Origin: Scyliorhinus canicula
Taxonomy: Eukaryota
Assembly (NCBI RefSeq): GCF_902713615.1
Contig: NC_052147.1
Span: 199,603,764-199,667,763, forward strand
Reading direction: 5' to 3'
Length of the DNA: 64,000 bases
Shown here piece after piece: positions 11 to 29,570 of the stretch (its first letter is position 1; each line of letters starts with the position of its first letter). A model generated the notes under the pieces. It did not search any database and had not been told where the DNA came from. It was given only the letters and a program-made list of their open reading frames with translations. Position numbers and translations under genes: made by a program.

Positions 11-90
11 CACTGATTTTTTTTCTATCTGCTTTTCGTTGGATTGGATTTGGAATCTGTCCAGATTGATCAGAGGACACTGGCTTTGTT
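11..90 (-). other. Putative non-coding 5'UTR exon (80 nt), probably of HoxD3
   Basis: Minus strand reads ttacattttctgctttcAG|AACAAAGCC...AATCAGTG|GTGAGT: a clean acceptor and consensus donor. It lies 3' of HoxD4, where Hox3 leader exons are expected. Confidence 0.55.
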
Positions 91-1460
91 CTGAAAGCAG
101 AAAATGTAATTAAATACTTTCAAGGACACTAATAGCATTTTTCTATATCCTATATATTTCAGGCCATCTTCTTGACTGCTATCAAACAAAGAAGGAAAGG
201 ATCTTGCAACAGGCCGCGTTTTGTTCAATGTATTTCTTTGTTTTTTGCATAAAATGTGTCGGAAAAATATGTTTCCTCGTGAGCTTTAATCAAACGGCTA
301 AGTGATTTGGTATATTTTATGAAAAAATAAAACGATGTTCACTTGTTTTGCTCCAGAAATGAGAAATTTGATGCTATTCAATAGCAACGCTGTGTGATTA
401 ATGAGCCGAGTTGCATTGTCAGTGAATTAAAAAAGATAGAAGGGAAGAAGGGGTTAAATACATTTACAATCGGTAAAGATTGGGATAAGACATTTGGCTT
501 CCTTTTAAAAGAAAATTGCCGAAGAAACGCCTCCGGAGAATTTGAATACACAATAACAAAGAATTTCTTCCCAGCGATTTTCCTAATCCAAATTGTTATT
601 GCGGAAACATTAAGCTATTAATAGCATCAAGCATTTTAGATCGGAACTTCCATTTAAAGTACCAGAAATGTGCCTCGAGGGTGGGCTTATTACACACCGA
701 ACAATATATTTTGGGGCCTACTGTATTGGTAGGGAAATAGATCATTCTGTGGAGCCTTTTAATGGAGAATGGGCCTGAACGGAGCATTAAACAAGTATCA
801 CTATTTTACATCATGCAGTCTTTTGGTTTCCACGAACTCACTCCAAACCAGTATTCGGAAACTGGCTGTATTGACATTCTTCATAATAAAAATATAAGCG
901 TCTATTTCTTTTCCTGTTGAAGTTTAAATCAACGCGTTTAAGCAGAAATTGCCACCGTTGTCGAACATTTTATAGCCAGCTAACATAACAATACAAATAT
1001 GGAGGTTAGCAAGAAAGGGCCTGGCGCCATATATAAAGCTCATGAATAATGTATTATATTGACAGGCGGTTATGCTTTGTCATTGGGATATCAAACATCA
1101 TGTAATATTTTACATCGATTAGGCAGGCTCATAATGCTCGATATAAAAAGCTTGTTTATGCAAAAAGTAACTAAAATGCAATAACACAGCACCGCCGAAA
1201 CCCGCAAACAGGCTCCATCTCCAAATCAATCTGCAAGGAGCAGATGGAAGGTGGAAGGAAGCTGAAGTCAGGCAGAAACTGATTTTTAGGGAATGTTGAA
1301 TCAATTCAAAGCACATGCTTTAAATTTGAAAATATATTTAAGGGAAAAAAACAGCAACTGTGGCAGATCAGATGGACAAAGAAATCGCCGTCATTAGCTG
1401 ACAATATGTAAGAATCATAAGGCTTTGAAATGACCTTTGGCTTGTACAGCAATAACTCAC

Positions 1461-1730
1461 CACTTAATGAACAACGAACGGAAGCGCCTCCACTACCTCA
1501 CAATACAGCCCATCACACAACTTCACCATGGCTTTTCTATCCCTCTTTAATCCCACTAAGACGCAGCACTTTACAAACTAGTCTCACCAACTTGTGTCGA
1601 TATAGTTTGAAGTTAGAAGAGGATCCAACTCACAGTCGGCAAGACATCGCGTCCTCGGTCCAATGCCTCCCACCATAATGTGTGTAATGTATTCACGTGG
1701 CCATACGTCAATTTAAAAGGTTTTATTTCT
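1461..1730 (-). other. Putative non-coding 5'UTR exon / promoter region of HoxD3
   Basis: Acceptor cttaac...ttacAG at 1732-1731 and donor AGTG|GTGAGT at 1460. Contains a CACGTG E-box (~1694) and CCAAT (~1660), as in the other Hox promoters in this window. Confidence 0.45.
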
Positions 1731-4700
1731 CTGTAATCACGGGAAGTAAGTTAAGTATTTGCAGGACAAAGTCGCTACTTTTCGAGAAAGCAAGAACAGT
1801 GGACAAGCTTTAAACACTTGGTTGCTTTCAAACAGTTACTGATAACTTAAGTGCCCAGCTCTGATCTGGACGGTAAGTTTTTAAGCATCTTATTAATTTC
1901 GCAGCAGTGTAAGGGAGCTCTCATACTACCAACCTAAAAGGTATAAACAGATTATCCGTGTCAATAGGGTTAGCAGGATGAATATGTCGGAAAGTTTTGA
2001 AAACTTTTTTTTTGTGTCACGTTCCTAAATTTGCTGAACTGATTAGAGAACAATTACTTGTTTATTACTTTCGGTGTCCACCAAAGCACAACTCATGAGC
2101 CCAGGGCGGTTACTGTACGTGGTGCCTGAAAAAGTTTACACTTTCTGCAGAGATGAAAAATTTTAGTTGATAGTTACCATGGCTTGAGCTGAGGAGAGCG
2201 GTTTATTGAAATTTTAGGTGAAGTTATAAGTGAGTGGCCCCATCGAGCAAAATGAAATGCTCCTCAGAGTAATTGGATTCAGCTGACTAACATGGCAGCC
2301 CAGCAGCTTCCAGGCATGCAGCAATGAAAAATGCTCCACGCAAAAGTTTTCACCGAGCAAAACACATATGCAGACTGCAAAACAATGCTTATACCTGTGG
2401 ACATTCCGAGAAAATGTCCAAATCTGCATACAACAACTTGAATTTGGACAATTTATGTTTTCATTAAGAAAAAACGACCTCCATTATTAATATTCAGATT
2501 ACAGCGAATAACACAGTTGTTATATTAACTTAAAACGCAATTTCCAAAACAAACAACTTTAATCATATTCCCGATCCTACCTTAGATTAACTTCAGACCA
2601 ACGTTTTATGAACATTAATTATGAACAGTAATTAACAAAATTAAGATATATTTAAAAGTAGGAATTATTATAAAATTGAAAACAGTACAGTTGTATTCTT
2701 GGTTGCAATTAATAAGAGCAATTGAAGCGTTTCTAGAACTGAAAGAGAAAAAACAAGTTAACAATTAAATTTCACTTTCACTGTAACAAAGCCGCTCAGA
2801 TCCCATGATTTAAATGTGATGGTTCGTTTTTGAAATTTTCCCAAACTGGTTAATAGTGAAGTGCAAAAATATTGAATTGAATATAGAGACTATCTTCTGA
2901 CGCGAGTGTGAGTTAAAATAATATTCGATATTTGATGTCTAAATACATGTAAAAATACGGATATGCTGATTTCCTGGAAATTCGCAAATTGTTTTCCATG
3001 AAGGACAATAGCATTAATTGAGAAATAATTTATACAGGCTGCTGCAATAACTTTAGCCCGCAATATATTTCTGAAGCGCATAAATCAAAGAAGACTGCAG
3101 CCTGACGATAAGCTAGAGACAACAAATTAATGTGATTTACGATCTAAGTTTGCTAGTGACAGTTTGGAAAGTTCCCTGGGTTTCTGTGCCTTTTGATTTC
3201 GTTTTCCTTTTACATAAAACTGCAGAATCAGCTAAAATGAATCCACAAGACAAATCTGGGACACCTCTGGTTTGTCCGGTATAACCTTTCTCAAATTGCG
3301 CACTTTCGTGAAAGAGCAAATGTTTTTCTTCTCTATAAATCGCCATTCTTTGCTACAAAATCATTTTTTTCTGGTCTGCTACTGAAATGGAAATAATGCA
3401 CTAGTTTCCGTCAGAATTTCATACAATTTGGCATGAATAATTTGTCCTCTTGCTGAAGGCATTATCCAAACCTACTGCTAAAGGTTGCATATTATCATAC
3501 GATTGCTTACCTGTGTGTCAATTTATCATAAATCTATGCTTCTGAAACTCATTTTCTTAGCCTGCAGCTGCGAATAATATCCTGCGCCGTTTGTCTGGAG
3601 GCAGTGCAGTCTTAAACCAGATCTTGCGGTTTTACAGACATTTCGATACGAAATGCAGACGGTATTCCCGATAGAAATGGCTTCAGTCTCAGGGACAACT
3701 ACCAATAAAAACGGCGCACAGAGATGCTTTAGCTTTTAGATCTCAGCCGAGACTTTAGAATCGAGCATCCGACGAAGAAATTATATTTATAAACCGGTAG
3801 GTATTCCTTTAAAAAGTAGAAATTTATGAATTTTATAGTGCAACGGATACCTTTTATAATCAGAAAATATAGGCGCTGCCTTAAGATACAGGCATATTTG
3901 TTCACGTGATCTGTGTTACCAGATTGTTCTGATTGAGCCAGTAAGTTGAGCCAGCGTTACCTCACTAACATCTATTTAATATGGATTGTTTGGCGCTTTG
4001 AGTCACTTCTTACATTAACACTAATGAAGAGCTGAATGAAAATGAAACATTCGATGCTGCATTTGAAAAAGCATTGCGAGGTAGCTTCTTTCAGAACAGT
4101 GCCACGTTCACTAAATTGAACAATAGATTTCTATTTTATTGCCATTTCATAGCCTCTAGGTTGAACGTTGCTTATCATTCCTTCTAGTGTATTGAGTTGA
4201 TTATTGCACTCATTTATTTAATCTAACAAGTAGTACTTATGGAAGAACGGATTCTGTGTACACACACACACATACAAAACCAAGGAAGTGTATTTCTATA
4301 AAACATTTCATTCGGTTTAAAACATTTTAGTATTTGAAAGCAATCAGCGAGTCTCAAAAACAACACAAAAGATTAGAATAAAACGACAAAATATGTAATG
4401 TAACTACAACAGGCATATGTTTAGGTTAAATGTTGTGAGGTGATCACATTGAAATCTGGCCAATGAATTGGACTTCCTATTCATCCCGTTCAGGGTTGAA
4501 CTAGTTGAGTGAAGCCGTTAAAGAAATGCTGCAGCAGATACGATTTCTGTGAAACTCAATCTCCTCTTTTCCAGGAGCAGAAATTAATCATCGTTGGTAA
4601 CGGCAGTTTTATGCAATGAACTTGATGTCGGTGGACTAGGAATTAATGTGGCATTTTTCCCCTTTCTCTTTCAGGAGGTGCAGCTAAATCACAAGGACCA

Positions 4701-7699
4701 GTGACAATGTCTGGTTATACAAATGCCTCACAAAACCAGGCGTTGGAGGATGTCGTTTCATTTTGACTGTTCTTATTTTGTATTTACCCCCAAAAATGTT
4801 TTGTTGAAAGATCGTGCTTTTAGTTAGGAGAAATTAATTTCCAGTTACATTCTATCGAATTGCTTAATATTTCTGTTAAATGTTACTTACAACTTGCTCG
4901 AAATATCTGAAACATTTGTCTGTAATTTAATAGCAATAAAAAACATTTCTATTGACAGTAATGCATGACCTTATTGCACCGAGCGCTGGCTTAACGCAAC
5001 ATTTATCTAAATTACTTTACCCTCTGTGGCTTATATGGTCGTTATAAAAATATTGCTTTGCAATTACTGCATTATAAATTATTTAAAAGAAAATAAGGAT
5101 TACATCTCAGTGTTTAACTAAGGCGCCACTTTTGGTCAAAATCTATGTTGAGCGAATTCGAAACTCTGCGTTTTGACGATTGTTCATAACATTACGATTG
5201 TTGTGGGATTTCTAAAACAGACACATCTTTTATATGGTTCAAATTGTCCCATGTTCGCGACTTTTCATGTAATGTCTGTTAAAGTATTGCTCGATCCCCA
5301 AAGTGTAAATTGACCATTTTATCACGGCAAGATTCCCCTTGCCTGATAATTTTATGAGACTAAGATGAAGCAACTAAGTGTTAATGCTCGCCACTGTGGG
5401 AACTCAACTTTACGGGAAATATAATCAAATGGGGCTCCGAAGACGGCTTCGACTGCAGCATATGTTCATACAGCAATAAAAAGGAGAGATTTACAATCTT
5501 CGCCTGGCCTCGGCAGCCTTGCAGCCTTTCAGGAATTACGAGTAGTGATTTATAACAGTGGAAAATTGTTGACCCCACCCCCAACAACAACTTTCTTCCG
5601 ATTTAATGAAAAAGTTGTAATTAAAGCGTTTTCATTGATTCGTGTCTGCCTAGTTCTTCGCTGGATTGGGATTGGGATTTAACGGTAGACGAAACGGAGT
5701 TGACGAGAGAGCCGGCAAAATAGTAACTTGGCGATAGGACCGCAGTTTTGTCATCAGTAAAACAGCGCTGCATTTGTCATCGGCGAATAACTGAATTAAT
5801 AGGTTATTGTTTTAATGCATAATTTATTAAAAAAGGAAACGAGCGTTGACTTTACACACGTGACGACAGCACAAATTCAATTTCCATAAGTGTTTTGTGA
5901 CTAAAGCAACGGAAGCAATAAATGCAGAGGTCCATGTTGTAAAGTATCTCCAACCAACTTAATAAAATCCTTTTTCAAAGGATATCTGCGTTTGCCACAG
6001 TAATTTATGCAGTTTAATTACAGCTTTAGAAAGAAGTTTAGGAACTGATCTGCCATATATGCAACTCCGACACTACAACTATAATTTAGGTTAAGGTCTG
6101 ATGCAACGTTACACCTTAAAATGTTTATTTACAATTTGTTTTTAATCTTTACCCTAATAATAACACTTTTGCTCATTATTATTAAACGACCAACAATAGA
6201 AAGCTAGATCGTGTTTGTACCTTATTGCGTTGCATTATCTATATTATACATGTGAGGCAGAGTTTAATACGACATCCTATTATTATCATTCTAACCTCAA
6301 ATCAGCAAATCAGAATATGCCACTTTATTACATTAGAACATGTACCGATAGTGAAAATACACTTTGTTTCTGTGCCGGGTAGAAATCACAACCGTTTATT
6401 ATTTAAATCAGTCAAGTACGCTCTTCTAGTTTTGTGGACAATCATTAAACAGACTGCTGTAGGAAAGACAGAAACTCATTTTCTGTCAAATAAAATCCCG
6501 GTAGATTCAAATGAGACATTTGTTTCACCTTTTAAACAAAACATCTATTAAAAAATGAAGCACCAAACGCTCATGAATATAGTTCCTGTACATGAGTACC
6601 TGCAATTGCCCTAATTGAATCTTATTTACAGACTTTCCATTACATCTCAAAAGAAAACAAAATATATAACTCGTGGTATTCAACATAAACGCAGGCCTCT
6701 ATTTCGCTGTGTACAAATAGGCAGCAGATGTCATGACAGCCGGCATTGTTTGCAATAAAGCACAACTAAACCGTAAAATCTACGCCATTTCATGACACTC
6801 AACTACGCCTTAATAACAACCTCATCGCAGTCTTACTAACGTTTACCCCCACCTCCAAAATGCAGCCGGTACAAATTTCTGCATCTGAAGTTTATCATAG
6901 TTGCTCCAAAATGTTAAGCCTAATCCGGATAGAAGGTCAGTATATCTGCCTACTACAACTTATGACTGTCGCCTGGTAGCACAGAGTATGAAGCAAAGGG
7001 CGCTATTCATCAAATATATATGACAGTTACATTCATTTGCTACCTTAGCAGAAACAAAACTAAAATTGTTTACCTACCAAGCTCCCATTTTTCAGTTTCT
7101 GGCAACGAACCACAACAGCAAAGTGAAATAGCGGACCATTTGTATATAATATTCTTGGGATCTGTTCACTTTTCAAGTGTGATAGAGTCCTTTGCTTGGC
7201 CGATTAATGACGACGCCGTGTTTCTTTCGGGACGTACTGCATTAATTATTTAGTAAATCACGTGGCCGAATCAAATATAAAAGGATACATAAAATCTTGC
7301 CACTTCTTCTGGACATAATCATAAAATGCATACGTCTTTAGCATTTGAGAAATATTTGGTTGGTAAATATGTTTTAAAATTCGAAAGGGGAAGACTAACA
7401 AATATGGCTGTTTAGTAGCGTTGGGTTGCATCAGCTTTGTCCCATTTTGAATGACCAGCCTATGGCATGGTCGGATTGACTCTTTGCCTTCCTTTCCGCT
7501 CTTTCTCTTTCCACACTAGAAGCGGATTAACGGGGCGGTGTACATACAACAATAACAGTGCAGTGAACATTTCTCATTTAAGTTTATTCGGATTTATTCA
7601 AAGAAACTAAATAGTAAGATCATTTTATTTTTAAGAAAGTTAAATCATAAGAGGTGGGTCATTTAATGCATGTTTTTGCCCCTGATATGTGGATAGAGC

Positions 7700-7900
7700 T
7701 AAACACATGCGCGTACTGAAAGTACGCATGTACATTATCGCATACGCACCCACGCATATATACATTCATGCATATATCTATACATACACGCGGCCATATC
7801 CACATATGTACACAAGCACACGTGCATATGTACATAAATGCACACACACAAAAACACACGCATGCATAGGAAAACAGATACATGCAAACAAACAAACAGC
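7700..7900. repeat. Degenerate (CA/TA)n low-complexity microsatellite
   Basis: Alternating purine-pyrimidine tract (cacacatgcatatatac...). It produces spurious Cys/Val/Met-rich ORFs. Confidence 0.85.
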
Positions 7901-9470
7901 ACGCAGCTAGATATAAGGGGTATGTGCAGCCGTGGGAGCTGTGTTGTGCGTCGATAGATATAAATATGCAAGTTGATTGATTGTGATTGATATTACATGT
8001 GACGTTGTGAATTTTGAATGATATAACAGTTCAGAAATCATGATGTTGTTTACTTTTATGTTCTGTGCTTCCCTTGTTTGCGTACTCGATATTAATGTGA
8101 CAAATTACACAATGAAAGAACTTGAAAATAATTAAGATGCTGAATTTAAAACATTTGAATTATAAATTGTAACCAGTGCCTGCACAAGTACATGTAGCTG
8201 GATAGGTTAAATATTGATAAATTACATGACTAAATGAATATGAGACGTTATCAATTGACCTTGGTGGTAACTGCGGTTAAAAGTAGACTGCTTTTCAAGG
8301 AGATAGGTGTTGCACAAAAGTCAAAGTCATACACTGCTTACAGCTTCTTGTGGCATATATGCTCTGGTAATTTAGATTGTACCTCAGAAAAGACAACACT
8401 TGCAGCTGATTAATTGCTACTTATTTGGGCGTTTCGCATGCATGTGTCTCGCTTTCAGTGATCACTGATTTACCAAGTATTTACAAAACATTTTAACAAG
8501 TTCGTTCAGTTTCACTTTTCTTGGGTAGTTGTTAAATTGAGAGGGAAACTCCATTGCTCTCAACTCTCATAGTAGACGATGCAAATTGTTTATTTTTTTG
8601 GTGGGGGTGGGTGTATGATTATGAGTTATAACTTGGCAATAACATGGGACCAGATCAAAACACCTACATGGCAGGATGCTGTGTCCACTTTGTGGCAAAA
8701 ATGTGACTTCTTTAATGAAAACAAATGAATAATGACAAAATTATGTAGACGCTATCCATAATAAAGATGCAACGGTGCTTGTGGATATAATTATTTCCAA
8801 CTGTATAACTGGATTTTTTGTAATTTTTTTTGTTTTACTGTTGTACATGCTGCTATATTATTTAGCTAAAAGGAATTCAATCCTGCTTTGACAAACCAAT
8901 ATGGACAGCTATTCGACACAAACACCAACCACTGCAACATGAGTTCGAGTATTTTTAGCATATCAATGAATGTGGCAAAATTATATTTTCATGGCGCCTA
9001 TGTGGAGATAGAATTTAGTGTGAATCGCAATGCAAATATTAAGAATTGAATGCCTTGGAGTGTTTCTGAGGATTTTCATTATTCAAGCATCATTGAAAGG
9101 TAAGCAGGAACATACTGAGTTGAAAATAGGCCACTTCAAAAGCTGAGTCAATGAACAACTTCTACGTTGTATGGTTAGAGGTAAAGTGTAGACAATGGCT
9201 GAAGTGTCACTTCTGTGAAGGTGCGGGAGAAAAGTGGGGTTTAGAAGCATCGTGCATGATTCTAAAATCTGCATCTCCTGAGAATGGATGCAAAAGTACC
9301 CTGTAGAAATTGGAGCAGTTCATACGTGAGAAACTGTTTCAACTGGCTTTAACTAGAGGGTGTCTGTGTTAAAACACATAGAAAAGGCGAAGGGTAGGAT
9401 TGAGTCCAAAAGGTCAAGGGTTTAGAGGTCAGTCCTCCAGGCTGAAATACAGCTAATCGAATAGAAAATT

Positions 9471-9487
9471 TGTCCTCTTGGTGAACC
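9471..9487 (-). promoter_or_regulatory. DR5 retinoic acid response element, HoxD4 3' neural enhancer type
   Basis: Minus strand GGTTCA-CCAAG-AGGACA, about 2.5 kb 3' of the HoxD4 stop. Form and position match the known Hox4 3' RAREs. Confidence 0.8.
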
Positions 9488-11293
9488 TGTTTCTACAGTT
9501 TAGCCGAACTTCAGTAAAAATACCTTTTCAGCTTCTCAACATGAAGGCGTCAGAAAAGGACATCTTTGCTACGCGTGAACCTTAGTGTTTTGTACTGGAG
9601 ACAATGATTTAAATGGTATAGAGAATATCACTCATTTATAATATCAAGACGTGGATATATTATAGTAATGTCATGTGCAAGTCTGAGAACTACAAGGCTT
9701 ATCCTAAAAAGAACAAAGAATCTTGGAATTTGCCTTTTCAAGCAGCCCATGTCCAGCTAAGCCAGCTGCAGGCTTGCAGGGCACTAAAGGGACAAGGAGA
9801 AAGAGCTGCGCCGCCAACTTTCTTTTGTTACTGAATGCGACAAAACCGAGTTGAGCATCGAAATTCTCCCGAAACAGATTTTCTTCACTACTTGTATTTG
9901 GACGGAATTCTGGCATTTCCAGCTAAATTGCTGTGTGATTGCGATAATGATTTCCTGAGAGTTGGTTAGGCACGGCTTCCTTTTAGCGGATTAGAAAGCC
10001 CACTAACACGAACCCCTCCGGACTTTTTCCCTTTACATAGCCTTTCTACCTAGAGCTTCGATTATTTGAAGGCAGTATTGTGCTCATTCGCCATCTTTCT
10101 TTTCTAAAGCTCCAATTTTGCAGATCGGAGAAAAATAAAGCGATAGAAATCTAAGGCACCTAACATGTGTTCGCGGTTTTAATAATACGAAAGGCAAGAA
10201 CCCTCAATTGTAATCACACAACTACACACAATGCCGTCCCCCCTCCCATTTCTCTCTCGCATGACCATCAGAATTCCGAGAAAACACGCTTCAGTGTGAG
10301 GAGGCTGTGGAATCAAATTCCTCACAAAACAAAACTTACATTAACTGTGCCCGGAAGGGTTTTGTGAGCATTTTAAAAATGTCTCTTCATATTTAGCTGA
10401 TGGAGGTAATATTCTGATGAAAACGGTAAGGCATGTTCGAATAACTAATGAACTGTTCCTTCGTGTCACAAAGGGGCTTCATTCCGTTTCAGCATCTGGA
10501 TATCCAACAATGAATGACCGTTTTAAAACATTGCATAGAAGAACTGAATGCGAAATCTCCATGACATACCAATGTGCCACTGATTGATATCGTGAGAATA
10601 TTGGCACATAACAGCCAGTCTTGTATTTCAGGAAGTTCTGACTCGTTTCGCCTGATTGTAACATTACATTAGCTTCCTTAAAACTGCCAGAAACAAGAAT
10701 CTTCAGCAATTTGTGTTTAGGTGTAAATTACCTAATTGAAGAGCCTCTCGGCTATTGTCCCTGCCCCTCTAAATCAACCACCAGTGTGTCTTTACAGATT
10801 AATAGGCTGGAAAAACGAACAGGGCTCTTCACTAAGCAAAATATACACGGTGTCGAGCATTTCTGTTTCTAAACTGTGTACCTTGTCGCATTGTTGTTCG
10901 CTCATCCGTTTTGAAGAAAATCGAAAGGAAACGCATTCCCACTTGTAATACTAAACGTTCACAGATTGGTGTAACTAACTTACTCATTTATCAACCAACA
11001 ACCCGAGAAGCAGAGTTGACCAAGCACCCTGAACACAAAGTATTGTTGCAATATTTCACTAACCGCACTTTTATTTCCGAAATCTTGCTTTAGATCACAT
11101 CGGGTGGCGTTTTTTGATTGCCTATTTGATATTGAATTGGAAGTCACTGGATTTGTGGCATTTTGTATTCCTGCATCTTCATGACATTTGCACACGACAG
11201 CGTTGTAACAGGAGCGGGAGTCACATATAAGAATCCATTTCCAGATATCAAGAAAGGAAAACAACTCACGCTATTCAGCTTATTACTACTAAA

Positions 11294-11956: not shown

Positions 11957-12267
11957 CTATAAACTTGTGAGGTCTGTTTGGTGGTCCTTGGAAACAGTTT
12001 GTAACTGTTGATTGGAAGTCGAGGAAGGACCAGATGATCTGGTCTTTGTGTTAGGCAGTTTGTGATCTTTTTTCCACTTCATTCTTCGGTTCTGAAACCA
12101 AATTTTGATCTGGCGTTCGGAAAGACATAAAGTGTGAGCTATTTCAATCCGACGTCGTCTTGTCAGATACCTGTTAAAATGGAATTCCTTTTCCAGTTCT
12201 AAAACCTGCTGCCTTGTGTAGGCAGTTCGTGAACGTTTTGGTTCCCCTCCTGTGTAATTAGGGTTCA
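11957..12267 (-). CDS. HOXD4: Homeobox protein Hox-D4, exon 2 (homeodomain); full protein 240 aa
   Basis: Encodes [75 protein letters not shown]. Acceptor tttttcAG at 12269-12268; TAG stop at 11959-11957. Confidence 0.97.
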
Positions 12268-12756: not shown

Positions 12757-13168
12757 CCGTGTTAACGTGGACTTTCTTCATCCAAGGGTAAACCACTGCT
12801 GGTTGTTTGGTTGCTGTGCCGTTTTGGTTCTTTGGATTATGTTGCTGCTGGCTGCAAGGCCGGCCTATGGACACTTGGAGCGGTGCAACGGGCTCCCCCT
12901 GCCCTGTGAGGTGGTCCTGGAGAGCGGGCTGTGCCTGCAGTTGACCCCTCTGCTGCACTGGAGAGCCCCGAGCATTGCTGCAGCTGTACGGCTGGCCGCT
13001 GTAGTTTGACCGTGGATAGATTCCTTGGTGCTGAAAATCTGAATCCTGCGCCTGGCTGTAATACTCTGAGCAGTGGTCAGGTATGTAGTTATTTTGCGAG
13101 TATTCCTCGCAAGGTGGAAATTTGGGATCCACATATTTAGTGTTCATCAAATACGAACTCATGGTCAT
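12757..13168 (-). CDS. HOXD4: Homeobox protein Hox-D4, exon 1
   Basis: N-terminus [23 protein letters not shown] and hexapeptide region [13 protein letters not shown]. Donor G|GTAAGA at 12756, phase 1, in frame with exon 2. Confidence 0.97.
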
Positions 13169-13325: not shown

Positions 13326-14513
13326 GCTAATGACAATTTTTTACAAACTTCGTCCAGAAAACCTTGATTTAAAAATAAATTAAAAACTGCAAGGTCTTGA
13401 TTCCCCCCCCAGCAGCCACTAAGTATTTGAAACAGATTCCGGAAAATGCATACAATAGAGGTTTCCATTTGGAGAGAATAATGACCACTCACTGAGCGCC
13501 CGAATATTGCTCAGGTAATTTCTCTTTTGTCCAAAAGAGAATTTTCCACCATTCTTGCCGCTTTTCAAATAAAACAAGGGGAGCGATTGCATGCGGCCTG
13601 TTGGTATCTGTTGTTGCTGTTTCTTCCCCGGGAGCAGCAGGACAATAGCGAGGGTTCCTGGAGAAACGGCCAGCAATCCAACGTACGCAGGGTGACAAAG
13701 GAAGCATCCAGCTAGCCAAGAAAAGGAATAACGGAGCTGAGGGAAATAATTACAGCCATTACCGATTCAGAAAGGTCTTTTGGACAAAGTTATTCAAAGG
13801 CAAACATGGCCTGCTCCGATAGAGTCAGAACATGGACTTCCCGTATCACATAAAGCACTTTGCACATGTTGCTTAAGGACATTGTAAGATGAAACATACT
13901 TTGTTCTGAAAGTTTAAAAAAATGGAAGACTGGAATATAAGTTTAATATCTGACGATCCGAAGCATTTGTGTTCCAATTTCTTCACAATTCGTTGTTTTT
14001 CCCTCTCACGTGCACTCACAGCTATTATCTCCTTAAACTATTTCAATAGCTAACTCTTACATTTGTAATATGCACAATTCGAATTTCAAGTTTTGAACTA
14101 AGGGACGTTCTAGTCCGTTTTAATTGCAAAGCATCGTGTGATACGAAACCGCCAGCCAATCTTTGTAGATAATTTATCGTCATCGCCATGGAAACAGGCA
14201 GCTTGAGAAAGAAATACTTCAGTTTCAGTAATCTTAGATTTCCTGAGAGTAAATCCGGAAGTTTAGAAACGACTACATTCGCACTAATGATCAGTAAATC
14301 AACACGTTAAACATCACAGTTCGATTGCAAAGGGGAGCTGAAATAAACCATTCATTGTTAAGCGGCGAGAGCTAAAAGCCTACTCAATATTGAAAAGTGG
14401 ATTCAAAACAAAAAGAGGCCATTCCTAATCAAATCATTCAGTATTACTGAGAACGTAATCACTCTAAGCAGTAAAGGCCACGAGGAGCAAATTGCTGATT
14501 TTCGTAGTGTTGG

Positions 14514-14596: not shown

Positions 14597-16217
14597 GGTT
14601 GCAAATAAATTCGGTGACTAATTACGATATGGGAAAGTAGTTTTAAAAGCTACAGTTGCAAGCGGACTCCAAGGAGTTAATGGCTTGCAATATTAATAAA
14701 TAAGAAAAGAAAATTCAGACAAAGCGACTGGTCAACAATTTAATTGTTTGGCCACTGAAAAATAATAGAAGTCGTCCTTTATAACAGGTCGGTGATAGCG
14801 AACATTTCTACGTGCGTTGTTCGGCAGTGGCAGCAACGTGAATCAGCGTGCATACAGTGTACAAGGCAGAAGTTATTATTTGTTACTCTGCATATGAGCC
14901 CTTGGTATTTCACAGAGATTTTATAGGAAACAGTTTGTACCGATCCGCTCCAGCTAACATTACTAAGTGCCCCAGCGTGAATCAATAATTGCTCCAGATG
15001 CTAATAATTTGAACTCACCACTAACAAACCGCAGGATGTTATAACAAATATCACCCGGACTAAACAATTCCTAAATCTAATCAAAAACAAGTTATACATG
15101 ATAGCACAAATATTAGTTTATTTCAAAGTGTTCTGCACTCATTGCTACTTCCATAAAATGATAGCAGCGCAGGAAAATAACGATTGTTTGTTCTATTCTA
15201 ATCTCTACCTCGGAGCTGGATAATATAATACTGCAGGCAGGCCTGGCAATCTGCTTTAAATTCTAATTAGCAACAGTCAATTGGATCGTCACATGCCGGG
15301 AAAAAATATGTACAATTTAGTATGACAACTAACCAGGATTCCCTTTGCCTCGAACATGTCTAAGGTGGTTTCTAAACTCTAGTGCATTGTAGATTCCTTA
15401 CTTTGCTCTCCCCACTGTCCCCGCAGTGTCACCGCGTTGTGTGTTAAAGGCCGAAGGGCACCGGGGTCAGACTGAAATCATTTACAAACACCTCGCAAAG
15501 TTGCATTATTATTTTCACTTTAGGGAGCGCCACACGCCTGACCTTTTATAAATGTGTGAATCTAGCCGAACTAACTATTCAGCTAAGTTTACAGTAATTC
15601 TGTCCTTCTGACTCGAGTTGGAATAAAAGGCACACGAGAGGCTGAGGACAATTCTAAACGTACGCCAACGAAACCGAGTAAGTGGATTCGACAGCACAAA
15701 GGCTAGGTTGAAATGTTTTTGGCTGCACTGGTTAACAAAGTAATACTGAAACTGTACTTTCTGACAGCAAATGGGAATCTTCACTTTATTTCTCTGCTAC
15801 TTCTGCCGAGCACAATAACGCTTTCGCTGCATGGACGCTTTATTGCAGAGCAGCCAAACTAAAGCTCTATAAATGTGCAACCTCATGTTTAATCCCGAAG
15901 TAAATTTCTGTTTTGATGATTTTACCTTCTGTAAAAAAAAATCCAAAGCGTCGCTAAAAGTCTGGTTTATTTACCTGTGATTTTTTTTCCTTCACCCCAG
16001 TGCATTAGGAAAGAAAAAGGCTAAACAGTTTTCGACAACCAATGACGCCAACGAATGCACCGGCGGTGAATTCTGCTTTTAAAAGCCTTTTTGCAAAGAA
16101 AATCCCAGATATCGTTACATCATCCGCTAATTGAAAAGCCAAATGTCTTTACTGTTCAAATTATCGCAGATAGTGAAGCTGATTGGTGCTACACATTTTA
16201 ATATTTGTTAGACGCTG

Positions 16218-16234
16218 TGACCTGCATTTCACCT
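16218..16234 (-). promoter_or_regulatory. DR5 retinoic acid response element, HoxD4 5' RARE
   Basis: Minus strand AGGTGA-AATGC-AGGTCA, as I recall the mammalian Hoxd4 upstream RARE, about 3 kb upstream of the ATG. Confidence 0.88.
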
Positions 16235-17979
16235 TACTGCTCGACTCGTTCAGACAGGTCAATGCCAAAGAGTTATTGATGAACAAACCCGATTAAAATT
16301 CACCTCTTTTTTAACTGCCCACACAAGTGCTGCGACTTTTGATCTAGCAGATTTTGACCTAGAGAATGTCAATGCAAAGTAAGTGTTTGGGAAGTGAACC
16401 CTATATTTATTCATAGATTCAGTGGTTCAATGAAAGCTATTATTGCCATGAGTCTGCTAAGGGCCTTCCTGCGTATAAATACAACGATTTAAAAACCAAA
16501 ATTGAATTTTTAAAAAGTTCACCTTTCTAGTGACCCAGAAAGTCATTTTCTTGCAGAAGTCCGCTCAGCATAAGGGCGACTGTTTTGCTTTTCAGTGGCA
16601 ATTACCCTTGATTACTTATCAACGCCTAGAGATTCACATTGTAAAACTTAGTGCTGAAACGAAGGAGCCATTGCGCTGGCCCATTGCTTTGCCAATACCG
16701 GTTAAACGTTATCGGGATCTATTTAAAGTGAGTTATTGTTTGACGTTTATCTCGTGGCGTAATTACTCGTTACTTGGTGGGCAATAATATTGGATATTAA
16801 GTGTAGAGATAGACTAGTATCTGTAAATGTCTGCATTTGATACCCTTAGCAGTGCTTACAATTAGCTGAGGTGCAGGAGCAATAGTCGATCGAAGGTGAA
16901 AAGAAACATTCAAAGTCCCTTGTGTGGGACATGTCTATTACTGCCTTGCGATAGCCAGATAGTAATTTAACTCAAGATGTTTTACTACTGTCCGTTTGAA
17001 ATAAAGACTTGAACCTATCTAATTTGACGTGCGGTTTTGGTTACTTTGATATTATTAGTTTTTCCTTAAAAAACTACAGTCTGAAGTTAATAGTTTCAGA
17101 TTATCTTCATAAACCTATACATAGGGAATTTTATTTACTGTATCTTTCATGGTAAACAAAAGACAATAAACTTTTGAAACATGCTCTCATTTAAAAAGCA
17201 ATTACATTTTGCAATAAGTTATACGAACTTTTGACGACAACTATTCCCCAAGCGACCTGGCGGACCTTTACAAAAAAACATTTTAATTCATAAAAGGTAA
17301 GCCTCGCCGATAAATAACCCATCAAAGGAATGCTGTGCTTCACTTAAATTAATAGTTAATTTTTTGCCCTGGCAGCCATAAGGCTTGATTTTTGGCCTAC
17401 ATGTTTACAGTGACTGTGATATCTGAAGAGCTTTAACATTTGCTTTCGCCCACACGCCTCTGTAGGCTCAGTAAGTGTCGACTTTAAATAGCTGCTATAA
17501 TTATTGCCACGTCATTCGACAAAGCGAGTTTACAGATGTTTATTGAAACCGGAACAATAATTTTCCTCCAAATGACCTTTTACAGATGCACCCTTGCACT
17601 GGGAGGCGCTGTGTTGTACATTACCAGTTCAAAATAACAACCCAGCTAAATCGGACTCTGGATATACACTGTCACAGATAGAGTTGAGCACAATAATATT
17701 TTAACTGACTTTACTCTGTACCTATAAAGATCGTAACCCTTTCAGGGAAATTGAATGTACCAGCATAATTTCTCCCATGCCGTTATACAAATTAAGCAGA
17801 GTACCAGGAAGGATGTAAGCTGTGCACAATTGTTACTAAAATCCGTTTCCAATCCACAGAACCGCTCCCTTTAGACCCACAATGTGACGATTTCGTTTTC
17901 CACATAAACCACATCCGGAAAAAAACAATCGCTTCCAACTATTCACCACACATTTAAGAAATAACACACAGTTACTTAC

Positions 17980-18006
17980 GGAAGAACCTCCTCCATTCTG
18001 CCAGAC
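17980..18006 (-). other. Putative 27-nt non-coding micro-exon
   Basis: tctaac branch point + tttgattttattttattgcAG | GTCTGGCAGAATGGAGGAGGTTCTTCC | GTAAGT. Confidence 0.6.
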
Positions 18007-21000
18007 CTGCAATAAAATAAAATCAAAGTTAGATTGAACAGTTCAGACTCAGTAAATCACACAATGAAGATGGGAATCAGTGCGATATATACCCACAATG
18101 GCTTTCTGATATTAAAGTAACTGAAATACTGTTAACTTCGCGAGTTCAGGTAAGCGATCTTCATGATATTACTTTCGAATGCAAAGATTGTCAATACGAT
18201 CTACAATATAATTTATGTTACCATGAGAACAACAGCTCTGTATTGTCATGGTGCGACGTTTTAAGCAAAAATATCGATCATTTATATACGGCGTATTTTA
18301 CTCTGGCCTACTAATTGATATGACACCACTCGTTTCACTTTACATTGTTTAAGCACAGGAAACTCATGTAATGTCATATGTTCTTGGTAAACAGTAATTT
18401 GAATATTGGTTTCACATTGTCCTCCACGCCGTGTCTGTCAAGGCACTTTCAACTATCCTTCACTAGTTAACCTGGTCATACATTGAACTTTAAAAATGTA
18501 TACATGCATAAAGCGTCGATTTGTAATGACATTATGAAAACTACACCTTCTCCGTGGGCCGTTATCCACTCTCAAATATGTTCTCCAATATCTTGGCAGG
18601 GGCTTTTTCAGCGTTCTGTTTGCAATTTTTTCAATTGCGAATTTTATTGAACATTTCGAGTGCCGAAAAAATCGTTCATCCGAGATGCTAAACCACCTCG
18701 ATTGTTTTGAAGATTTTCGAAATCTTTATTTTTCAAATATTAACAAAATATTTCCAAAATTCTCCATTGAACTGAATTAGCTAAAAAGGGCAGAACGTGC
18801 TATAGTTTTATTGTTTAAAAGCCAATCCGAATTATTTATGGGTGAATTACTCACATTTCCAGTTGTCAGTAAACATTTTTCATCTCAGCTCTTTGGGCTG
18901 AGCCTGTCCCCTGTCATGTTTGATATTTATTAATTTTCTTTTGCATTTTGGTTCCCATCTCGCACGGTTTACGATTTCATTGCCCCTCCCCCTCCCCTTC
19001 CTCTTGAAACCTTGTCATATCATTCTACATTTTCAGCAACATTTAAGTAGGCCACACATAATGTCAACGTGTCACAAAAACAATTAATAAGCTTAGTTTA
19101 TTTGGCAGTGCCTCGCTATATGTGGGCCACATGAGTAGTCAAAAAAGAATTCCGAACTAAATTATCAGCAACTGCAGTGAGTGTTCAGACTGCATTGTTT
19201 TTAAAAAAATGAAGATATTTTTTCAGCGGCTTTTTGAAGAAAAAGAAAATAGATTAAGCAGCAAACTGTTCATCATTGTTCAATAATTCTGTTCCAAATT
19301 GTTCGCAATTTGGGACTCCGAACCGTGATACCTAGAACCGAACTAATTAGCTAACCTCAGTGAATTAAGAGGAGGTTCAGCAAAGCATATGTAGTAAATG
19401 TTTGATTCTTCTTTGAACTTGCAGAACTAGTCCTTAAATTAGCTAATATCCCCAAAATATTTTCGGTCAAACTCGCAGACTATAGAGTAGCAATTTGTAT
19501 CCTCTGCAGAGCTTTGGTTCTCTGACCTCCGATTTTTAAAAACAAGATCGATTTTCAACGTATGAAAGTGTTATAAGGCTAGTGCAGTTAATATCTTTCA
19601 GAGCTGGCTGAATTAAAATACACGTGATCAAACTGTACAAAAGCTCCTTGTTTTTGTAAAGAACCCAATTTAAACGGTTTATTTCTGAATTGTTCATTTA
19701 ACTGTATAATATGATTATGACGCACAACATTCTTCATGATTAAGCATTTGAAATTGTAGTTGGAAATTTAGTAGCATGCAAAGTTTATAATTTATTTCGA
19801 ATATTGCAATATCATTTTCATAATTGAACACAGATATGTTATAACCGGTATCTGTTGAAACTGAACTCATGCAGTACTCTGTCTTTCTAGTTTTTGGCTG
19901 GCCAAGAAGTAGTGCATGCGCCCAAGAGGCCCGAATGACATCAGGTGTCACGCAATCACCAGCTCTGTTGCCGATTAGAAATAACTTACTTGCTGTTTTT
20001 CCAGCGCAAAGGTATTAGGACCCTAGGACACTGCCAATGCGAACAGGACCGCTTGCTTCTTGGTGTCACTTTCCACAGACCCTCTCAAAAACACGAACCC
20101 ATCTGCACTTGCCTGCTCTTAACCTAATATATGATGTGAATTATATTTTGGCTTGTCAACTCCCCTAACCATAAAACAAAGTTTAATGACATCACGTGCC
20201 CCTCTATAGCCAGTCAGAAACAGGCTCTGTGGCGTCCATATAAATAACGCTTAAACTTTAAAACTTTTATTCACTAAAGACAGTCATGTTCATCGAAATG
20301 CTGTCTCAGTAATATAAAGCTAAACATCTGAGTGCCCAGAGGACGCGTTCTTTGGAGAATAAGTTACCTTTACTTTAAAACGCAGCTTGGGCAGTTCTTA
20401 TACAACCACGGGGATCTATTAGATTTGGTAAGTGTAAATACACTAGATGTATACGTGACCGATAGGGTCTGAGCTACAGTGAAATGGAAATTGGTCGATT
20501 GAAAAATAAGACAAGATGCCCTTTTAACAGTTATAACGCCCTATGACTTTGTTTCTCTATTTCTGTCGCTTCAGCAATATAAGTTCCTACTGCTTTAGTC
20601 ATAAGCGTTCGGTAGAACAAGTATTCTCAGTGCAGTTAACCTGGTAAGTTATTCAATGCAATGCAACCTGATATCAAGTATTAATACGTTCCATAGCTCT
20701 TCCAAACAAATCCCAACTCTGGATATGTATGTTTTTCAAATATGTATGTTAATATTCATGAATAAAAGTAAATTATTCCATTAAATAACAGGCTTTCAAA
20801 CTATCTTTTCAAAATTACCATGTCTGTAATCTAGGTGCTGAAGTTTCTCAAGCATGACTCATGTTAAATAAAGTTATTGGAATAAGTATAAACTCGGCCA
20901 ACACGTCTTGCCAATAATAATATTTTTTTAATTCAGAAAACGTTCAAAGACGATTCAGCCCAAGGAACTTTTATGAGTTCTGAAACATTGGGGCTAGTAT

Positions 21001-21785: not shown

Positions 21786-22037
<252 letters not shown>

Positions 22038-22400: not shown

Positions 22401-22908
22401 CTTGGTTAAGGTGCATCTTTTTCATCCATGGGTATATCTGCAACTGTCGGGCTGGATCCTTGTCTAGTTGTTCACTTTCCGGTTTGGGGCTGTTAGTCCC
22501 CTTAGGATGTCCATCGTTAAGCGGTGAAGTGTCCTGGTCACCGCTGTATGAGTGACTAGACTCTGTGATAGCGGCCCCCGTCTTGATTGCCCTGTCTGAT
22601 GGGTTTATTAAAGATGCCGAGCAGAAGGCAGGATCTGGAGACTTCATTTTCATCTCATTTGAGCTCTGAAAGGTGTTGCTGGCTGTTTGCAGGTAGTTAG
22701 CAGACCTTTCACTGTCTCCACACAGATTTGAGTTAGAACGAGTCATGCTGAGATCTATCCCCGTGTAATCATAGCCATACCTGGCGGAGAGCACCGTCGG
22801 CTCCCTAAAATGCTCGCCCACAGAAGCAGCATTTCCATAACTCTGCAACTGATAATCGTGGCCATTTTGGTAGCGACCTGAGAAGGAGTTTAAAAAGTAG
22901 GAACTCAT
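22401..22908 (-). CDS. HOXD5: Homeobox protein Hox-D5, exon 1
   Basis: Group-5 N-terminus [21 protein letters not shown], the [11 protein letters not shown] motif and hexapeptide [10 protein letters not shown]. Donor CAAG|GTACT at 22400, phase 1. Confidence 0.95.
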
Positions 22909-22964: not shown

Positions 22965-23085
22965 CGATATATAATGAAATATGGAAATAAAAGGCACATG
23001 TCATTTCTCTGCCTTCTACGTATGCAACCAAATATGGGACACAAGTTTAGATCACGTGTTTTTGTTGACCAGTCGTAAATTCTTG
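22965..23085 (-). promoter_or_regulatory. Conserved Hox5 proximal promoter
   Basis: Minus strand AATTTACGACTGGTCAACAAAAACACGTGAT...CCCATATTTGG...TACGTAG...TTTCCATA, a block resembling the Hoxa5/b5/c5 promoters. Confidence 0.75.
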
Positions 23086-23150: not shown

Positions 23151-23169
23151 TAGCGCCTCCTGCTGGCAA
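23151..23169 (-). promoter_or_regulatory. CTCF-binding motif at the Hox5|6 position
   Basis: Minus strand TTGCCAGCAGGAGGCGCTA closely fits CCASYAGRKGGCRS; about 245 bp upstream of the HoxD5 ATG. Confidence 0.75.
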
Positions 23170-26100: not shown

Positions 26101-26304
26101 GTTGGCGGCGATCTGATTACTTTTTGAGACAGACGTTAAGTTGAAAAGTTGTTTGCATTAAATAAATAATTTTAATATTTTGTTGTTGTTCTATTGAAAT
26201 TGGAAATTATATCTGAGCATTGTCGGTGTAGAAGATACACTGTCAGCAAAGTCGCACAGGTTGAAGGTTCTAAATGAACCGCTAGATACTGACTAAATCA
26301 ATTC

Positions 26305-26730
26305 ATGCACGCACATATACACGTATACACATGCAGGCACACAATTTGCACATACACATACACAGACGGACATATACATACGGAGACATAAACACACACA
26401 GGTAGACACATATACATACGGGCAGACATACAAGCACGCGCAGATACACACAAATACAGACACACGTATATATACAGACAAACATACACATAAATGCACA
26501 GACACAGATAGACATAGACAAACATATAAACGCACACGTAAAGATACGCATATATTTATACACACATACATAGATACACATATACACACACATGCACACA
26601 CACACACATACACATAAACCCACACAGATACGGACACAAATATACATCATGACAAACGTACACACATAAACGCACAGGCATACAGACACACAAACACACA
26701 CATGTACATACATACACACACATACACATA
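26305..26730. repeat. Long degenerate (CA)n/(TACA)n microsatellite
   Basis: About 425 bp of acacatacacagacacatata-type repeat; source of three spurious V/C/Y-rich ORFs. Confidence 0.9.
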
Positions 26731-29439
26731 GAGTGGCATTCCTGCGGAGTATTTTAGCACTTTTAGCAAGATTGTGAACTTCGTGACATTTAAGAGCATA
26801 AATTAAATAATTCGTTCTTAAAAATTGTAACTCTCATTGAATTAATAAATAAGCCTTTTCTAATGATTATGTTTATTATTTTTTCGTTGTTCTTTTTCAT
26901 GCGTTTACACTGAATTATGTATTGTCAAGAAAATTGATAAATCACAAATCAGTCTTTCCAAGTATTATAAAAAGATCAGAGTGTAGCTATCGCATACCTC
27001 CAGGTAAACAGCCTGGGTTTATTGAATATTATAGCTAAACAAATATTCATCTCGTTTAATTATGTAACAGAGACGAAAGGAGCTTGATTGATAAAACCTG
27101 CATAAGAATTCTTGTCTGCATCATTAACACACAGGAATTAACATGGACGATGCTTTGAGAATTATATGAAAATATACGATGAACACAATTACTAGCAATT
27201 GTTGCTTGTGAAATGAGGTAAAATGAAACTACTTTCTCAATAGGGCAATGAACACCTCTCCCAATCTTTTTTTAAATTTTTTTTATTACTTTATCTTAGC
27301 TACAAAGCCAGGGCTCAGAGTGTGGACAGAGGCGAACCCCTAATCCAGCTCCTTGCCTGCTCCAAAAACCAATTCAAATTGAATCCAATTCATGGCCCCC
27401 ATAAAGGAGACATACCAGATCTGAGCCAAAAGGCTCAATCTACGCTCGATCTTAGCCCTCTCCCAATCTGATATATCCGAGTATGATACATTTCTGTTTG
27501 TCGACCTGTTCTAAAAATAAATAATTGATATTGACACACTTACAATGTTATAAATAATAGTACGATTTAATTGCAAATGTTACAATATCTTTACACATGT
27601 ATTTGATTCTAGCAACAATTTGCAATATTATTTTAAGCAGTTTCTGTGTCCCTTTGACAAAATACCTGTTGGTCTATGCGGTAGATACAGGCAAGTATAG
27701 ATCAGCAGTTTGAAAATATCTCTTTCATTTGCCAATACATTTCAGATGCTAAAAAATTGAACCAATATTACTATAATTGTACGCCGCATGGATACTCAAA
27801 CCAATCCATTGCATTTTATCTACCAGTTAAAATAATCTAGAGACTGAAGGAATTCAAACATGTGACAGATATGACAATTTCAAATGGATGCAATTGCAAT
27901 CTCCCTCGATTCACTTTAATGTTAAGTGTGAGAAATCATAACCAATCCCTCTGGATATTTAATCACTGGGAATGGATACAAAGAAATGCCTTGGAAAATA
28001 TAACATCTCGCCCGCCCTTTTTCTGCGCATATTTCTACAGCAAGATGTTGCACCTAAATGGAAACGATGGTGGTGGGGGGGGGGGGGGGGGGGGGGGGGG
28101 AGAGAGAGAGAGTTGCGGGAACGGGACCCAGTATTTCTTTCGTGACCGTTACGTGCGAGCAATTATCATGGGTTTGGAATTTTTCCTACCAAATTAAAAC
28201 ACCCCGAAGTCTGCAGAGGTTAGAGTTTTGATATAGGTAACATCCAATTTAGGTACAACTTGTTGCAGTAAATGAGTCATCAGATGGGCGAGCTGCTATT
28301 ATTTGAAACATTTGCATTAAAAATACCGCAGTTAAATATTTATTGAATGGGCTGCTGATTACTAGCACATTAAAACCACAGTCTGTTATCGACTGCAGGG
28401 TAATTATTGCAAGAGTACCACTCATTTGTGCAAAGTTCTGTCACGTGGTTGGTCATCATGAAAATGTTGGCCAAACATTTCTTCTAAATTCTGATCGTTT
28501 CTATGATTACTGCACGGAATTATCCGGATCATTAACACAAGGCGCATCATTCATCTCTGCAATTCATCCTCAGCGTAAAAGAGTCCAACTAACATCCTCG
28601 TCCGAAAGACGCGGAAAAGCACACACTGACAAAAGGAGAAACAAGGCGCCAATCACCAATAACGATCAGATTTCACTCCCGCAAAATAACAGGAACAATT
28701 GTATTGCTATTGGCAGGAACAATAATCATTATCCCATGAGTAAACGACACACCCTGATTAATCTCCGCTCTGGATCATATGAGAAAATATCAGCTGCTTT
28801 GTAGAGAAGCTTTCATACCAAAAATTGACAAGAATCGCAACTCTTCGTCCCTATTGCGGAAAAGAAATATTTAATTCATCTGCGCCACTAGTCCCCATTT
28901 GAATTGAAATGACCACCCGTACACGGTTTGAATCTGTCTTGTTTGTTCATTTATGTCGAATGCTTCTCGACCTCCCAAACAGTTGCCTGCAACTCGACCA
29001 ACGAAACAAACGCCCTTCCCTCCTCTGTCCAGCGCTGTTATCTGCGACAGCAGAGAATAGAAAAACACAGCACTTACCCGCTTCCGGGCGGTTCCCCAGA
29101 ATAGTAACCAGCTGGATGTAGTATTCCATTTCGACTTTTTCGACAATAAAGGAACTTAAAAAAAGGTAAAGCGAAACTGAAGGGCAAACGGAACACTGTA
29201 AACAGACGTCAGCGGTCTGTGAGAGTGATCAGGTTGCTAAATCCCAGCATGGGTCGAATGACTTCCTCATAGTTGCACAGAAAAGGACTGAATAGCGCGA
29301 ATACAGCGGAAAGTCTCCTTTTTTGCAAGCAGCTGGCGTCAAATACCAACGACAAAAGCAGGCAAGGGCAGATACTGACAGAAAAGACGATTTGAGACGA
29401 GTTAGCAGCGGAATGCAGTGAAATATTCACAAGGGAAAT

Positions 29440-29570
29440 CATGAAAAGGCCATGAACGCAGTTACTAGGTTCACGTGACCCATGGCAGCCAATAGGAACG
29501 TCGCCTTCGTCGTAAAAGGTCCATTACAAAGTTGTAAATTTTCTTCAAACAAAAAGGAATTCGCAGCAAT
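29440..29570 (-). promoter_or_regulatory. Orphan Hox-type promoter between HoxD8 and HoxD5 (probably the element conserved in all four clusters between groups 8/7 and 6)
   Basis: Minus strand ATTTACAAC-TAATGG-TTTTACGAC-ATTGG-GTCACGTGA in tight array, with no coding exon after it. Strong donor CGG|GTAAGT at 29077. Confidence 0.6.

Follow-up and report, generated by a model that had tools for sequence, protein, structure and literature searches.

A probable multi-promoter transcription unit in the anterior-central HoxD cluster of the small-spotted catshark

We analysed a 64,000-nucleotide stretch of DNA (the window) from the small-spotted catshark Scyliorhinus canicula, which a listing of open reading frames (ORFs) and a homeodomain scan identified as the HoxD cluster, with six Hox genes on the minus strand. 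Our subject is a set of candidate promoters and leader exons in the part of the window below HoxD8, which probably make the anterior-central HoxD region one overlapping, multi-promoter transcription unit. All features described here lie on the minus (Hox-sense) strand, and their coordinates are given in the direction of transcription. HoxD11, HoxD10, HoxD9 and HoxD8 lie near 59.3, 49.5, 42.3 and 34.2 kb, respectively. HoxD5 is intact (coding sequence 22908–21789; exon 1, 22908–22402; exon 2, 22037–21789) and is 100% identical to S. canicula Hox-D5 X1 (P0019). The HoxD4 coding sequence occupies 13168–11957 (exon 1, 13168–12758; exon 2, about 12271–11960, with the stop codon reaching 11957), and its exons show 100% and 99% identity to S. 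canicula Hox-D4a (P0146). The mir-10 hairpin (miR-10b) lies at 14590–14519 and matched Rfam RF00104 with 69.5 bits (E 1.7e-15), while HoxD3 is located beyond coordinate 1.

An initial annotation, made from the letters alone, had described a chain of orphan promoters and non-coding exons on this strand that would splice across HoxD5 and HoxD4 into HoxD4, miR-10b and HoxD3, and had called it a complete ancestral leader-exon system. Every motif it listed was present in the window sequence on the minus strand. We compared the window with DNA of a chimaera (L001), little skate (L002 and L020), thorny skate (L019) and gar (L022), and with predicted (XP_) RefSeq isoform models of S. torazame, Mustelus asterias, Carcharodon, Mobula birostris and Hypanus; window letters 16190–16246 were excluded from the later searches and local comparisons. 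The models include those under accessions XP_072332954/962 (S. torazame), XP_078084585–90 (Mustelus), XP_072117903–11 (Mobula) and XP_059822693–713 (Hypanus). Because the chimaera and skate loci aligned with the window near-continuously, at about 60–78% identity in the main blocks, general conservation was a weak argument by itself. CpG content did not distinguish the promoter blocks either, the whole cluster being CpG-rich. Strong donor motifs were scarce: below 30 kb the Hox-sense strand holds seven GTAAGT sites, and three of them are the donors of the initial annotation.

Conserved promoter-like blocks and their donor-bearing exons

The first promoter-like conserved block spans 29640–29441, between HoxD8 and HoxD5, and carries an inverted CCAAT box (29493–29489) and an E-box, CACGTG (29477–29472). 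It is followed by candidate leader exon 1 (29440–29078, the 5' bound being nominal), which ends at CGG/GTAAGT with the donor GT at 29077–29076 (a slash marks the splice point here and below). Catshark and little skate were 93.6% identical over 29640–29500 and 91% identical over 29440–29200; the CCAAT box was invariant, and the E-box reads CATGTG in skates. The exon-1 donor, G/GTAAGTG, was invariant in two skates. The block also matched the gar locus (L022:13120–13353, 75% identity, E 7e-39), where a nearby small ORF that opens with ATG reaches a GTAAGTG donor in matching phase.

In the catshark, a small ORF runs from an ATG at 29129 to the exon-1 donor (MEYYIQLVTILGNRPEA plus 1 nt), and its peptide forms the N-terminus of isoforms P0012 and P0013 (S. 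torazame), P0001 and P0014 (Mustelus asterias), and P0160 and P0165 (Mobula birostris). In each of catshark, two skates, Mobula, Mustelus and gar, the ORF (29129–29078 in the window, L020:15075–15126 in skate and L022 ~13600–13650 in gar) was open and ended in phase 1, with amino acids that were weakly conserved between species. It may be a conserved upstream ORF, or the agreement may be coincidental. Catshark sequencing runs X23, X28 and X30, whose library type (RNA) was guessed so that the evidence is weak, held 0.17–0.24 of the sampled words of 28800–29600; run X23, likewise of guessed type, held only 0.04 of those of 14650–20300.

An ATTGG-N-TCAYRTG module of the 29.5-kb block recurs upstream of HoxD10, HoxD9 and HoxD4. 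We considered whether the block is what remains of a lost HoxD6 or HoxD7, namely its promoter and a stub of its first exon, kept for more than 400 million years (in catshark, skates and gar) as a shared start for HoxD5, HoxD4, miR-10b, HoxD3 and HoxD2, and whether mammalian HOXD3 retains it as its distant first exon. Its position is the one expected for a group 6–7 gene. However, local BLAST of the orphan elements against the other Hox 5' regions of the window returned only chance matches of 10–15 nt (E 0.4–0.9), and the spacing from the module to the first ATG differs, which leaves this origin doubtful. A further ATTGG-N-TCACATG module lies at 32237–32204, between the 3' end of HoxD8 and the 29.5-kb element, and may mark one more orphan promoter or have arisen by chance.

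The second promoter-like conserved block (20330–20171) lies just 3' of HoxD5 and contains CACGTG at 20198–20193. Skate HoxD5 mRNA contigs have a proximal start about 100–140 nt before the ATG (window-equivalent 23004–23049) and end in a poly(A) tail at the counterpart of ~21150; because the 20.2-kb element lies ~0.9 kb past this poly(A) site, it is outside the HoxD5 mRNA. Its candidate leader exon (20170–19990, again with a nominal 5' bound) ends at CAA/GTAAGT, with the donor GT at 19989–19988. Positions 20199–20050 showed 92–95% identity to skate and chimaera, the core matched gar (L022:18063–18317, E 1e-28), and the donor AA/GTAAG was invariant in catshark, skate, chimaera and gar. At the gar locus, which has no HoxD5, both promoter blocks occur in order downstream of HoxD8. 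With both blocks kept as far as gar, the word "ancestral" in the initial annotation was fair.

Peptide evidence for the 20-kb exon came from rays. Isoforms P0162 (Mobula) and P0167 (Hypanus) start with MHCKCPS.FYLCAG.AAN, which corresponds to the translated 3' end of this exon, and then continue into a 27-nt exon, so that the 19990 donor is a junction in these models. The window reads YLCAGKTA up to the donor after 19990, and the skate reads ATGCATTGG..., with the ATG present in skate DNA.

The 27-nt internal leader micro-exon lies at 18006–17980, between the acceptor ttattgcAG and the donor GTAAGT. Its acceptor (ttattgcAG), donor (GTAAGTA) and exact length were invariant in catshark, skate and chimaera, whereas its flanks were 46–57% identical. 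The exon is translated in P0160, P0162 and P0167 as ..VTEWR.. (window, ..LAEWRR..) and, in another frame and from its own ATG, in P0164 as MEEATQ (window, MEEVLP).

These elements might instead be conserved enhancers, with the splice-like motifs and isoforms amounting to transcriptional noise or annotation artefacts and no leader-exon system existing. Conserved non-coding blocks are indeed abundant in Hox clusters (this half of the window has more than 30), the 20-kb core contains Hox/Pbx/Meis-like motifs, and the junction evidence consists throughout of predicted models or a contig break-point. However, conservation around the 27-nt exon peaks at the splice sites and not in the flanks, the annotations of S. 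torazame, Mustelus, Carcharodon, Mobula and Hypanus arrive independently at the same junctions, and homologous units have been documented by experiment in mouse and zebrafish. We therefore regard an enhancer-only explanation as very unlikely.

Two non-coding blocks between the 27-nt exon and mir-10 (14880–15140 and 16247–16370) were 87–99% identical to skate and chimaera, and the former contains Hox/Pbx-like motifs. A GTGAGT at 15018 made 14880–15140 a candidate for a further exon, which we rejected: conservation is continuous across this "donor", and the chimaera has GTGGGT. We read the block as an enhancer-type element.

Splice routes into HoxD5 and HoxD4 and the position of miR-10b

HoxD5 coding exon 1 contains an internal acceptor, ctccttctcAG/GTCGC (AG 22879–22878), downstream of which the exon would start at 22877. 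In the window sequence, a join from 29078 to 22877 is in frame. A search with HoxD5 exon 1, followed by a listing of the 90% cluster it belongs to, showed that isoforms P0012/P0013 (S. torazame) and P0001/P0014 (Mustelus) begin with MEYNIQLVTILG(N/K)R(P/L)E(A/P)G before entering RYQNGH, so that in both species the part ahead of the junction ...PEAG/RYQNGH replaces the ordinary HoxD5 start. The S. torazame isoforms carrying exon 1 are named Hox-D3a, with a coding span of 7,093 nt between HoxD8 and HoxD4; the window counterpart, 29129–21789, measures 7,341 nt, which the S. torazame span fits. In Mustelus, Hox-D5 X2/X3 and Hox-D4a X4/X5 form one continuous series of accessions and isoform numbers, which suggests that the annotation pipeline merged the HoxD5 and HoxD4 genes through transcripts sharing exons.

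Since exon 1 is spliced in frame into HoxD5 in the models of two shark species, its upstream promoter would also act as an alternative HoxD5 promoter, and a HoxD5 protein variant without the conserved N-terminal MSSYF motif may exist. The initial annotation had HoxD5 intact but skipped. Ray models that join the 29.1-kb exon to the 27-nt exon agree with such skipping, but the shark models enter the gene instead.

This route raises the question of whether the 29.5-kb element is simply a distal alternative promoter of HoxD5, like the distal promoters of mouse Hoxa5, with its splicing to the 27-nt exon and into anterior genes being a rare, functionless by-product. The in-frame splicing in two sharks fits such a role, as does the phase 1 kept by the ORF from 29129 to the donor in catshark, skates, Mobula, Mustelus and gar, and the models directed to HoxD2 lack HoxD2 exon 1 and would give truncated products. 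Against it, gar has lost HoxD5 yet retains the promoter block and a donor-bearing exon, and the exon-1 peptide itself is weakly conserved between species. Moreover, the 27-nt exon would be useless to a unit serving HoxD5 only, yet both of its splice sites are invariant in three chondrichthyan lineages. We consider a purely HoxD5-directed role unlikely, although it is the strongest competitor of the shared, multi-promoter unit.

For HoxD4, the initial annotation had chosen the acceptor AG at 13713–13712, with an exon start at 13711, 543 nt before the ATG at 13168, and pyrimidines at 16/20 positions of the preceding tract. The dinucleotide and its distance were correct, but the AG is catshark-specific: skate and chimaera alike carry AA at the aligned positions. 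A second AG at 13738–13737 (ttatttccctcAG/CTCCG; exon start 13736, 568 nt before the ATG) is common to catshark and skate and is AA in chimaera. Using the little-skate HoxD4 protein, we compared nine Logan RNA contigs with the genomic locus L002. Contigs L003 and L004 were collinear with the genome far upstream of the ATG and were thus unspliced, whereas contigs L005–L008, from four different runs, started exactly at L002:9433, the position aligned with window 13736. Another contig started 3 nt before L002:9433, with the genomic CAG, and contig L010 has GAA ahead of it; the skate 27-nt exon ends in ...CGGAA. This pattern is the one expected in an assembly graph for an acceptor reached from both the intron and an upstream exon. 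Judged from these alignments, the HoxD4 leader acceptor is probably AG 13738–13737, 25 nt upstream of the one chosen initially. No RNA contigs matched the small ORFs of the catshark HoxD4 leader and of skate exon 1.

The initial annotation had further placed miR-10b in an intron. In relatives' models the 27-nt exon joins exon 90–11 (described below) or far-downstream Hox exons, and because 17980 is thereby joined to a downstream acceptor past HoxD5 and HoxD4, miR-10b would be intronic in the corresponding transcripts. The unspliced skate contig L003 starts at L002:8637 (about window 14505), 15 nt downstream of the mir-10 hairpin match. Its start resembles the Drosha-cut "P1" Hoxd4 RNA of mouse, a weak resemblance given that it is a single contig end.

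Exons beyond HoxD4 and the reach to HoxD2

An 80-nt leader exon lies in the HoxD4–HoxD3 interval at 90–11, between the acceptor tttcAG/A and the donor G/GTGAGT. Its translation (TKPVSSDQSGQIPNPIQRKADRKKISG) showed 78–81% identity to residues 166–197 of P0161 and P0163 and 45% identity to Hypanus P0164, and both ends of the exon coincide with predicted isoform junctions, as the initial annotation had drawn them. In the 209-aa isoforms P0161 (Mustelus) and P0163 (Carcharodon), HoxD4 sequence extends from exon 1 to FHFNR of the homeobox, where exon 90–11 takes over (...EFHFNR/TKP...). The corresponding donor within the catshark HoxD4 homeobox is CAG/GTATCT, directly after FHFNR, with the last exon base at 12171 and GT at 12170–12169. 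Ray X1-type isoforms (Hypanus and Mobula) also join the equivalent of 12171 to exon 90–11. The predicted product of a 12171>90-type join is either a 209-aa protein with a truncated homeodomain or 444-aa HoxD4–HoxD2 fusion frames.

Other models reach the same region from the upstream exons. Hypanus P0164 starts in the 27-nt exon (MEEATQ), continues with TKPAAPGQ..., the orthologue of exon 90–11, and then enters HoxD2 exon 2, which is equivalent to a 17980>90 join in the window. Mobula P0160 combines the exon-1 peptide with DVTEWREHRK (the 27-nt exon, in the frame of catshark GLAEWRRFF) and the homeodomain-containing exon 2 of HoxD2; Mobula P0165 joins exon 1 directly to HoxD2 exon 2; and P0162 and P0167 combine the 20-kb exon, the 27-nt exon and HoxD2 exon 2. 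HoxD2 exon 1 is absent from all these HoxD2-directed models, whose predicted proteins are truncated. Nothing in the window matched the N-terminus of Mobula P0158 or the C-terminal exon shared by P0161 and P0163. The chain of leaders feeding anterior genes thus stands in outline in relatives' models; as first drawn it was incomplete, because the ray models run beyond HoxD3 to HoxD2 exon 2.

The initial annotation had also placed an exon at 1730–1461 (AG/1730...1461/GTGAGT). With CACGTG at 1699–1694 and ATTGG near 1664, this candidate might alternatively be a further promoter with its first exon. Its support was confined to splice-like motifs: no isoform peptide of the relatives maps there, one relative's model joins 17980 to 90 directly and another joins 12171 to 90, bypassing 1730–1461 in each case.

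In the HoxD4–HoxD3 intergenic region, more than 12 blocks within 2980–11020 (for example 9350–9720, 6620–7480 and 4900–5100) showed at least 87% identity to skate as well as to chimaera and probably correspond to the known Hox4/Hox3 enhancers. Elsewhere in the window, a run of 418 N (34854–35271), an assembly gap or a masked stretch, lies directly upstream of HoxD8, and low-complexity TG/CA-rich stretches at 26290–26720 and 7660–7970 give rise to long artefactual Cys/Val-rich ORFs on both strands.

A shared transcription unit and its known counterparts

Taken together, these results indicate that the anterior-central catshark HoxD region is probably one overlapping, multi-promoter transcription unit, and the indirect evidence is strong for four of its elements: the 29.1-kb exon, the 20-kb exon, the 27-nt exon and exon 90–11. 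Between them, the models of five other elasmobranch species have junctions at the donors after 29078, 19990 and 17980, at the acceptor preceding 18006 and at either end of 90–11. A polycistronic Hox unit has been defined as at least two Hox genes transcribed from one promoter and sharing a non-coding exon (Mainguy et al. 2007, PMC1831499). Among the relatives' models, isoforms of HoxD5 type and isoforms directed to HoxD2 both start with the exon-1 peptide, and the 27-nt exon occurs downstream of two different first exons. As a matter of geometry, HoxD5 lies within the intron of a 29078>18006 join, mir-10 within that of a 17980>13736 join, and mir-10 together with HoxD4 within that of a 17980>90 join. 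Alignment of the splice sites, a check proposed with the initial annotation, showed conserved GT/AG boundaries for exon 1 in catshark and skates and for the 20-kb and 27-nt exons in catshark, skate and chimaera.

Several observations weigh against this interpretation. The junctions rest on relatives' predicted models and not on catshark reads or contigs, several of these models encode odd fusion or truncated proteins, as splicing noise also would, and the S. canicula proteins listed are the ordinary Hox-D5 X1/X2 and Hox-D4a only. With a cluster-wide identity of ~70% between catshark and chimaera, conservation alone cannot tell an exon from an enhancer. The chimaera has neither candidate AG upstream of HoxD4, and in gar a pattern search yielded no convincing counterpart of the 27-nt exon.

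In the arrangement we propose, two conserved promoter-like elements, at ~29.5 and ~20.2 kb, would each drive a non-coding first exon with a strong donor, and both are presumably true start sites. An exon lying still further upstream could nevertheless splice into either element. The 29.1-kb exon could either splice in frame into the internal HoxD5 acceptor, replacing the HoxD5 start with MEYYIQLVTILGNRPEAG, or bypass HoxD5 and join the 27-nt micro-exon, to which the 20-kb exon would also lead. From the micro-exon, one route would continue into the HoxD4 leader, probably at AG 13738–13737, with miR-10b in the excised intron; given this intronic position, HoxD4-leader transcripts would double as pri-miR-10b. 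The other route would bypass HoxD4 and lead through exon 90–11 to HoxD3 and HoxD2 exons outside the window. The same junctions are likely to be used in catshark RNA. The function of the unit may be to give the anterior genes and miR-10b a posterior, Hox5–8-like expression component; from mouse and zebrafish, such a posterior component of the anterior genes would be expected inside the miR-10 domain.

If this holds, long multi-exon Hox3/Hox4 leaders are not confined to mammals or teleosts. Individual leader exons, including the 27-nt micro-exon, and the two orphan promoter blocks would date at least to the ancestor of sharks, rays and chimaeras, and the promoter blocks to the ancestor shared with ray-finned fishes. 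Because they share transcripts, the anterior Hox genes and miR-10b could not drift apart. The splice coordinates given here can also serve the annotation of the catshark, whose current models may lack the leader exons. For this species, the review PMC9456325 attributes alternative HoxD3 transcripts to Oulion et al. 2010.

A close mammalian parallel is the polycistronic D4–D3–mir-10b cluster, listed by Mainguy et al. (2007, PMC1831499) as conserved in human and mouse. In the mouse, the upstream Hoxd4 promoter P2 is followed by four non-coding exons; miR-10b occupies intron 4, and the acceptor lies ~0.7 kb beyond the hairpin (Phua et al. 2011, PMC3185001). The proposed catshark layout resembles it in the upstream promoter, the short non-coding exons, the putative position of miR-10b in the last leader intron and a candidate leader acceptor a few hundred nucleotides before the HoxD4 ATG, whose AG the chimaera lacks. 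Mammalian D4 and D3 share a non-coding exon, as they would in a unit of the catshark type. Unlike the mammalian unit, the catshark unit contains an intact HoxD5, which would be skipped or entered at an internal acceptor, and the ray models extend to HoxD2.

A similar layout is that of the zebrafish transcript hoxb3a splv2, a case of promoter sharing by hoxb3a and hoxb4a. As summarised by Woltering and Durston (2008, PMC2148072) from Hadrys et al. (2004, 2006), this transcript begins 3' of hoxb5a, with one exon in the b5a–b4a interval, two in the b4a–b3a interval and miR-10c within it. In the catshark, a near-identical arrangement is formed by the 20-kb exon, the 27-nt exon and exon 90–11, with a candidate start just 3' of Hox5 and miR-10 in the primary transcript; the zebrafish unit, however, belongs to the paralogous HoxBa cluster, and only one of the two D4–D3 exons is supported in the window. 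In human HOXC4/C5/C6, an upstream non-coding exon at a common promoter is spliced alternatively to several Hox genes (Simeone et al. 1988, as related in PMC1831499). That arrangement is similar in that one upstream exon serves several genes, but it concerns another cluster and other genes, and the HOXC unit as related there includes no miRNA. Mouse Hoxa5, in the account of Coulombe et al. (2010, PMC2868907), has a proximal promoter, distal promoters in the group 6–7 zone and long transcripts; the catshark Hox5 gene would share the combination of proximal and distal promoters with it but would differ from it, so described, in that the distal exon alters the predicted HoxD5 N-terminus.

The catshark layout is thus the HoxD counterpart of the polycistronic Hox units of mammals and zebrafish and not a new kind of system, and its junctions are already present in the automated annotation of sister species. 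It stands apart in that an intact HoxD5 lies inside the unit and is entered in frame in shark models, in that the ray models extend as far as HoxD2, and in the documented age of individual exons.

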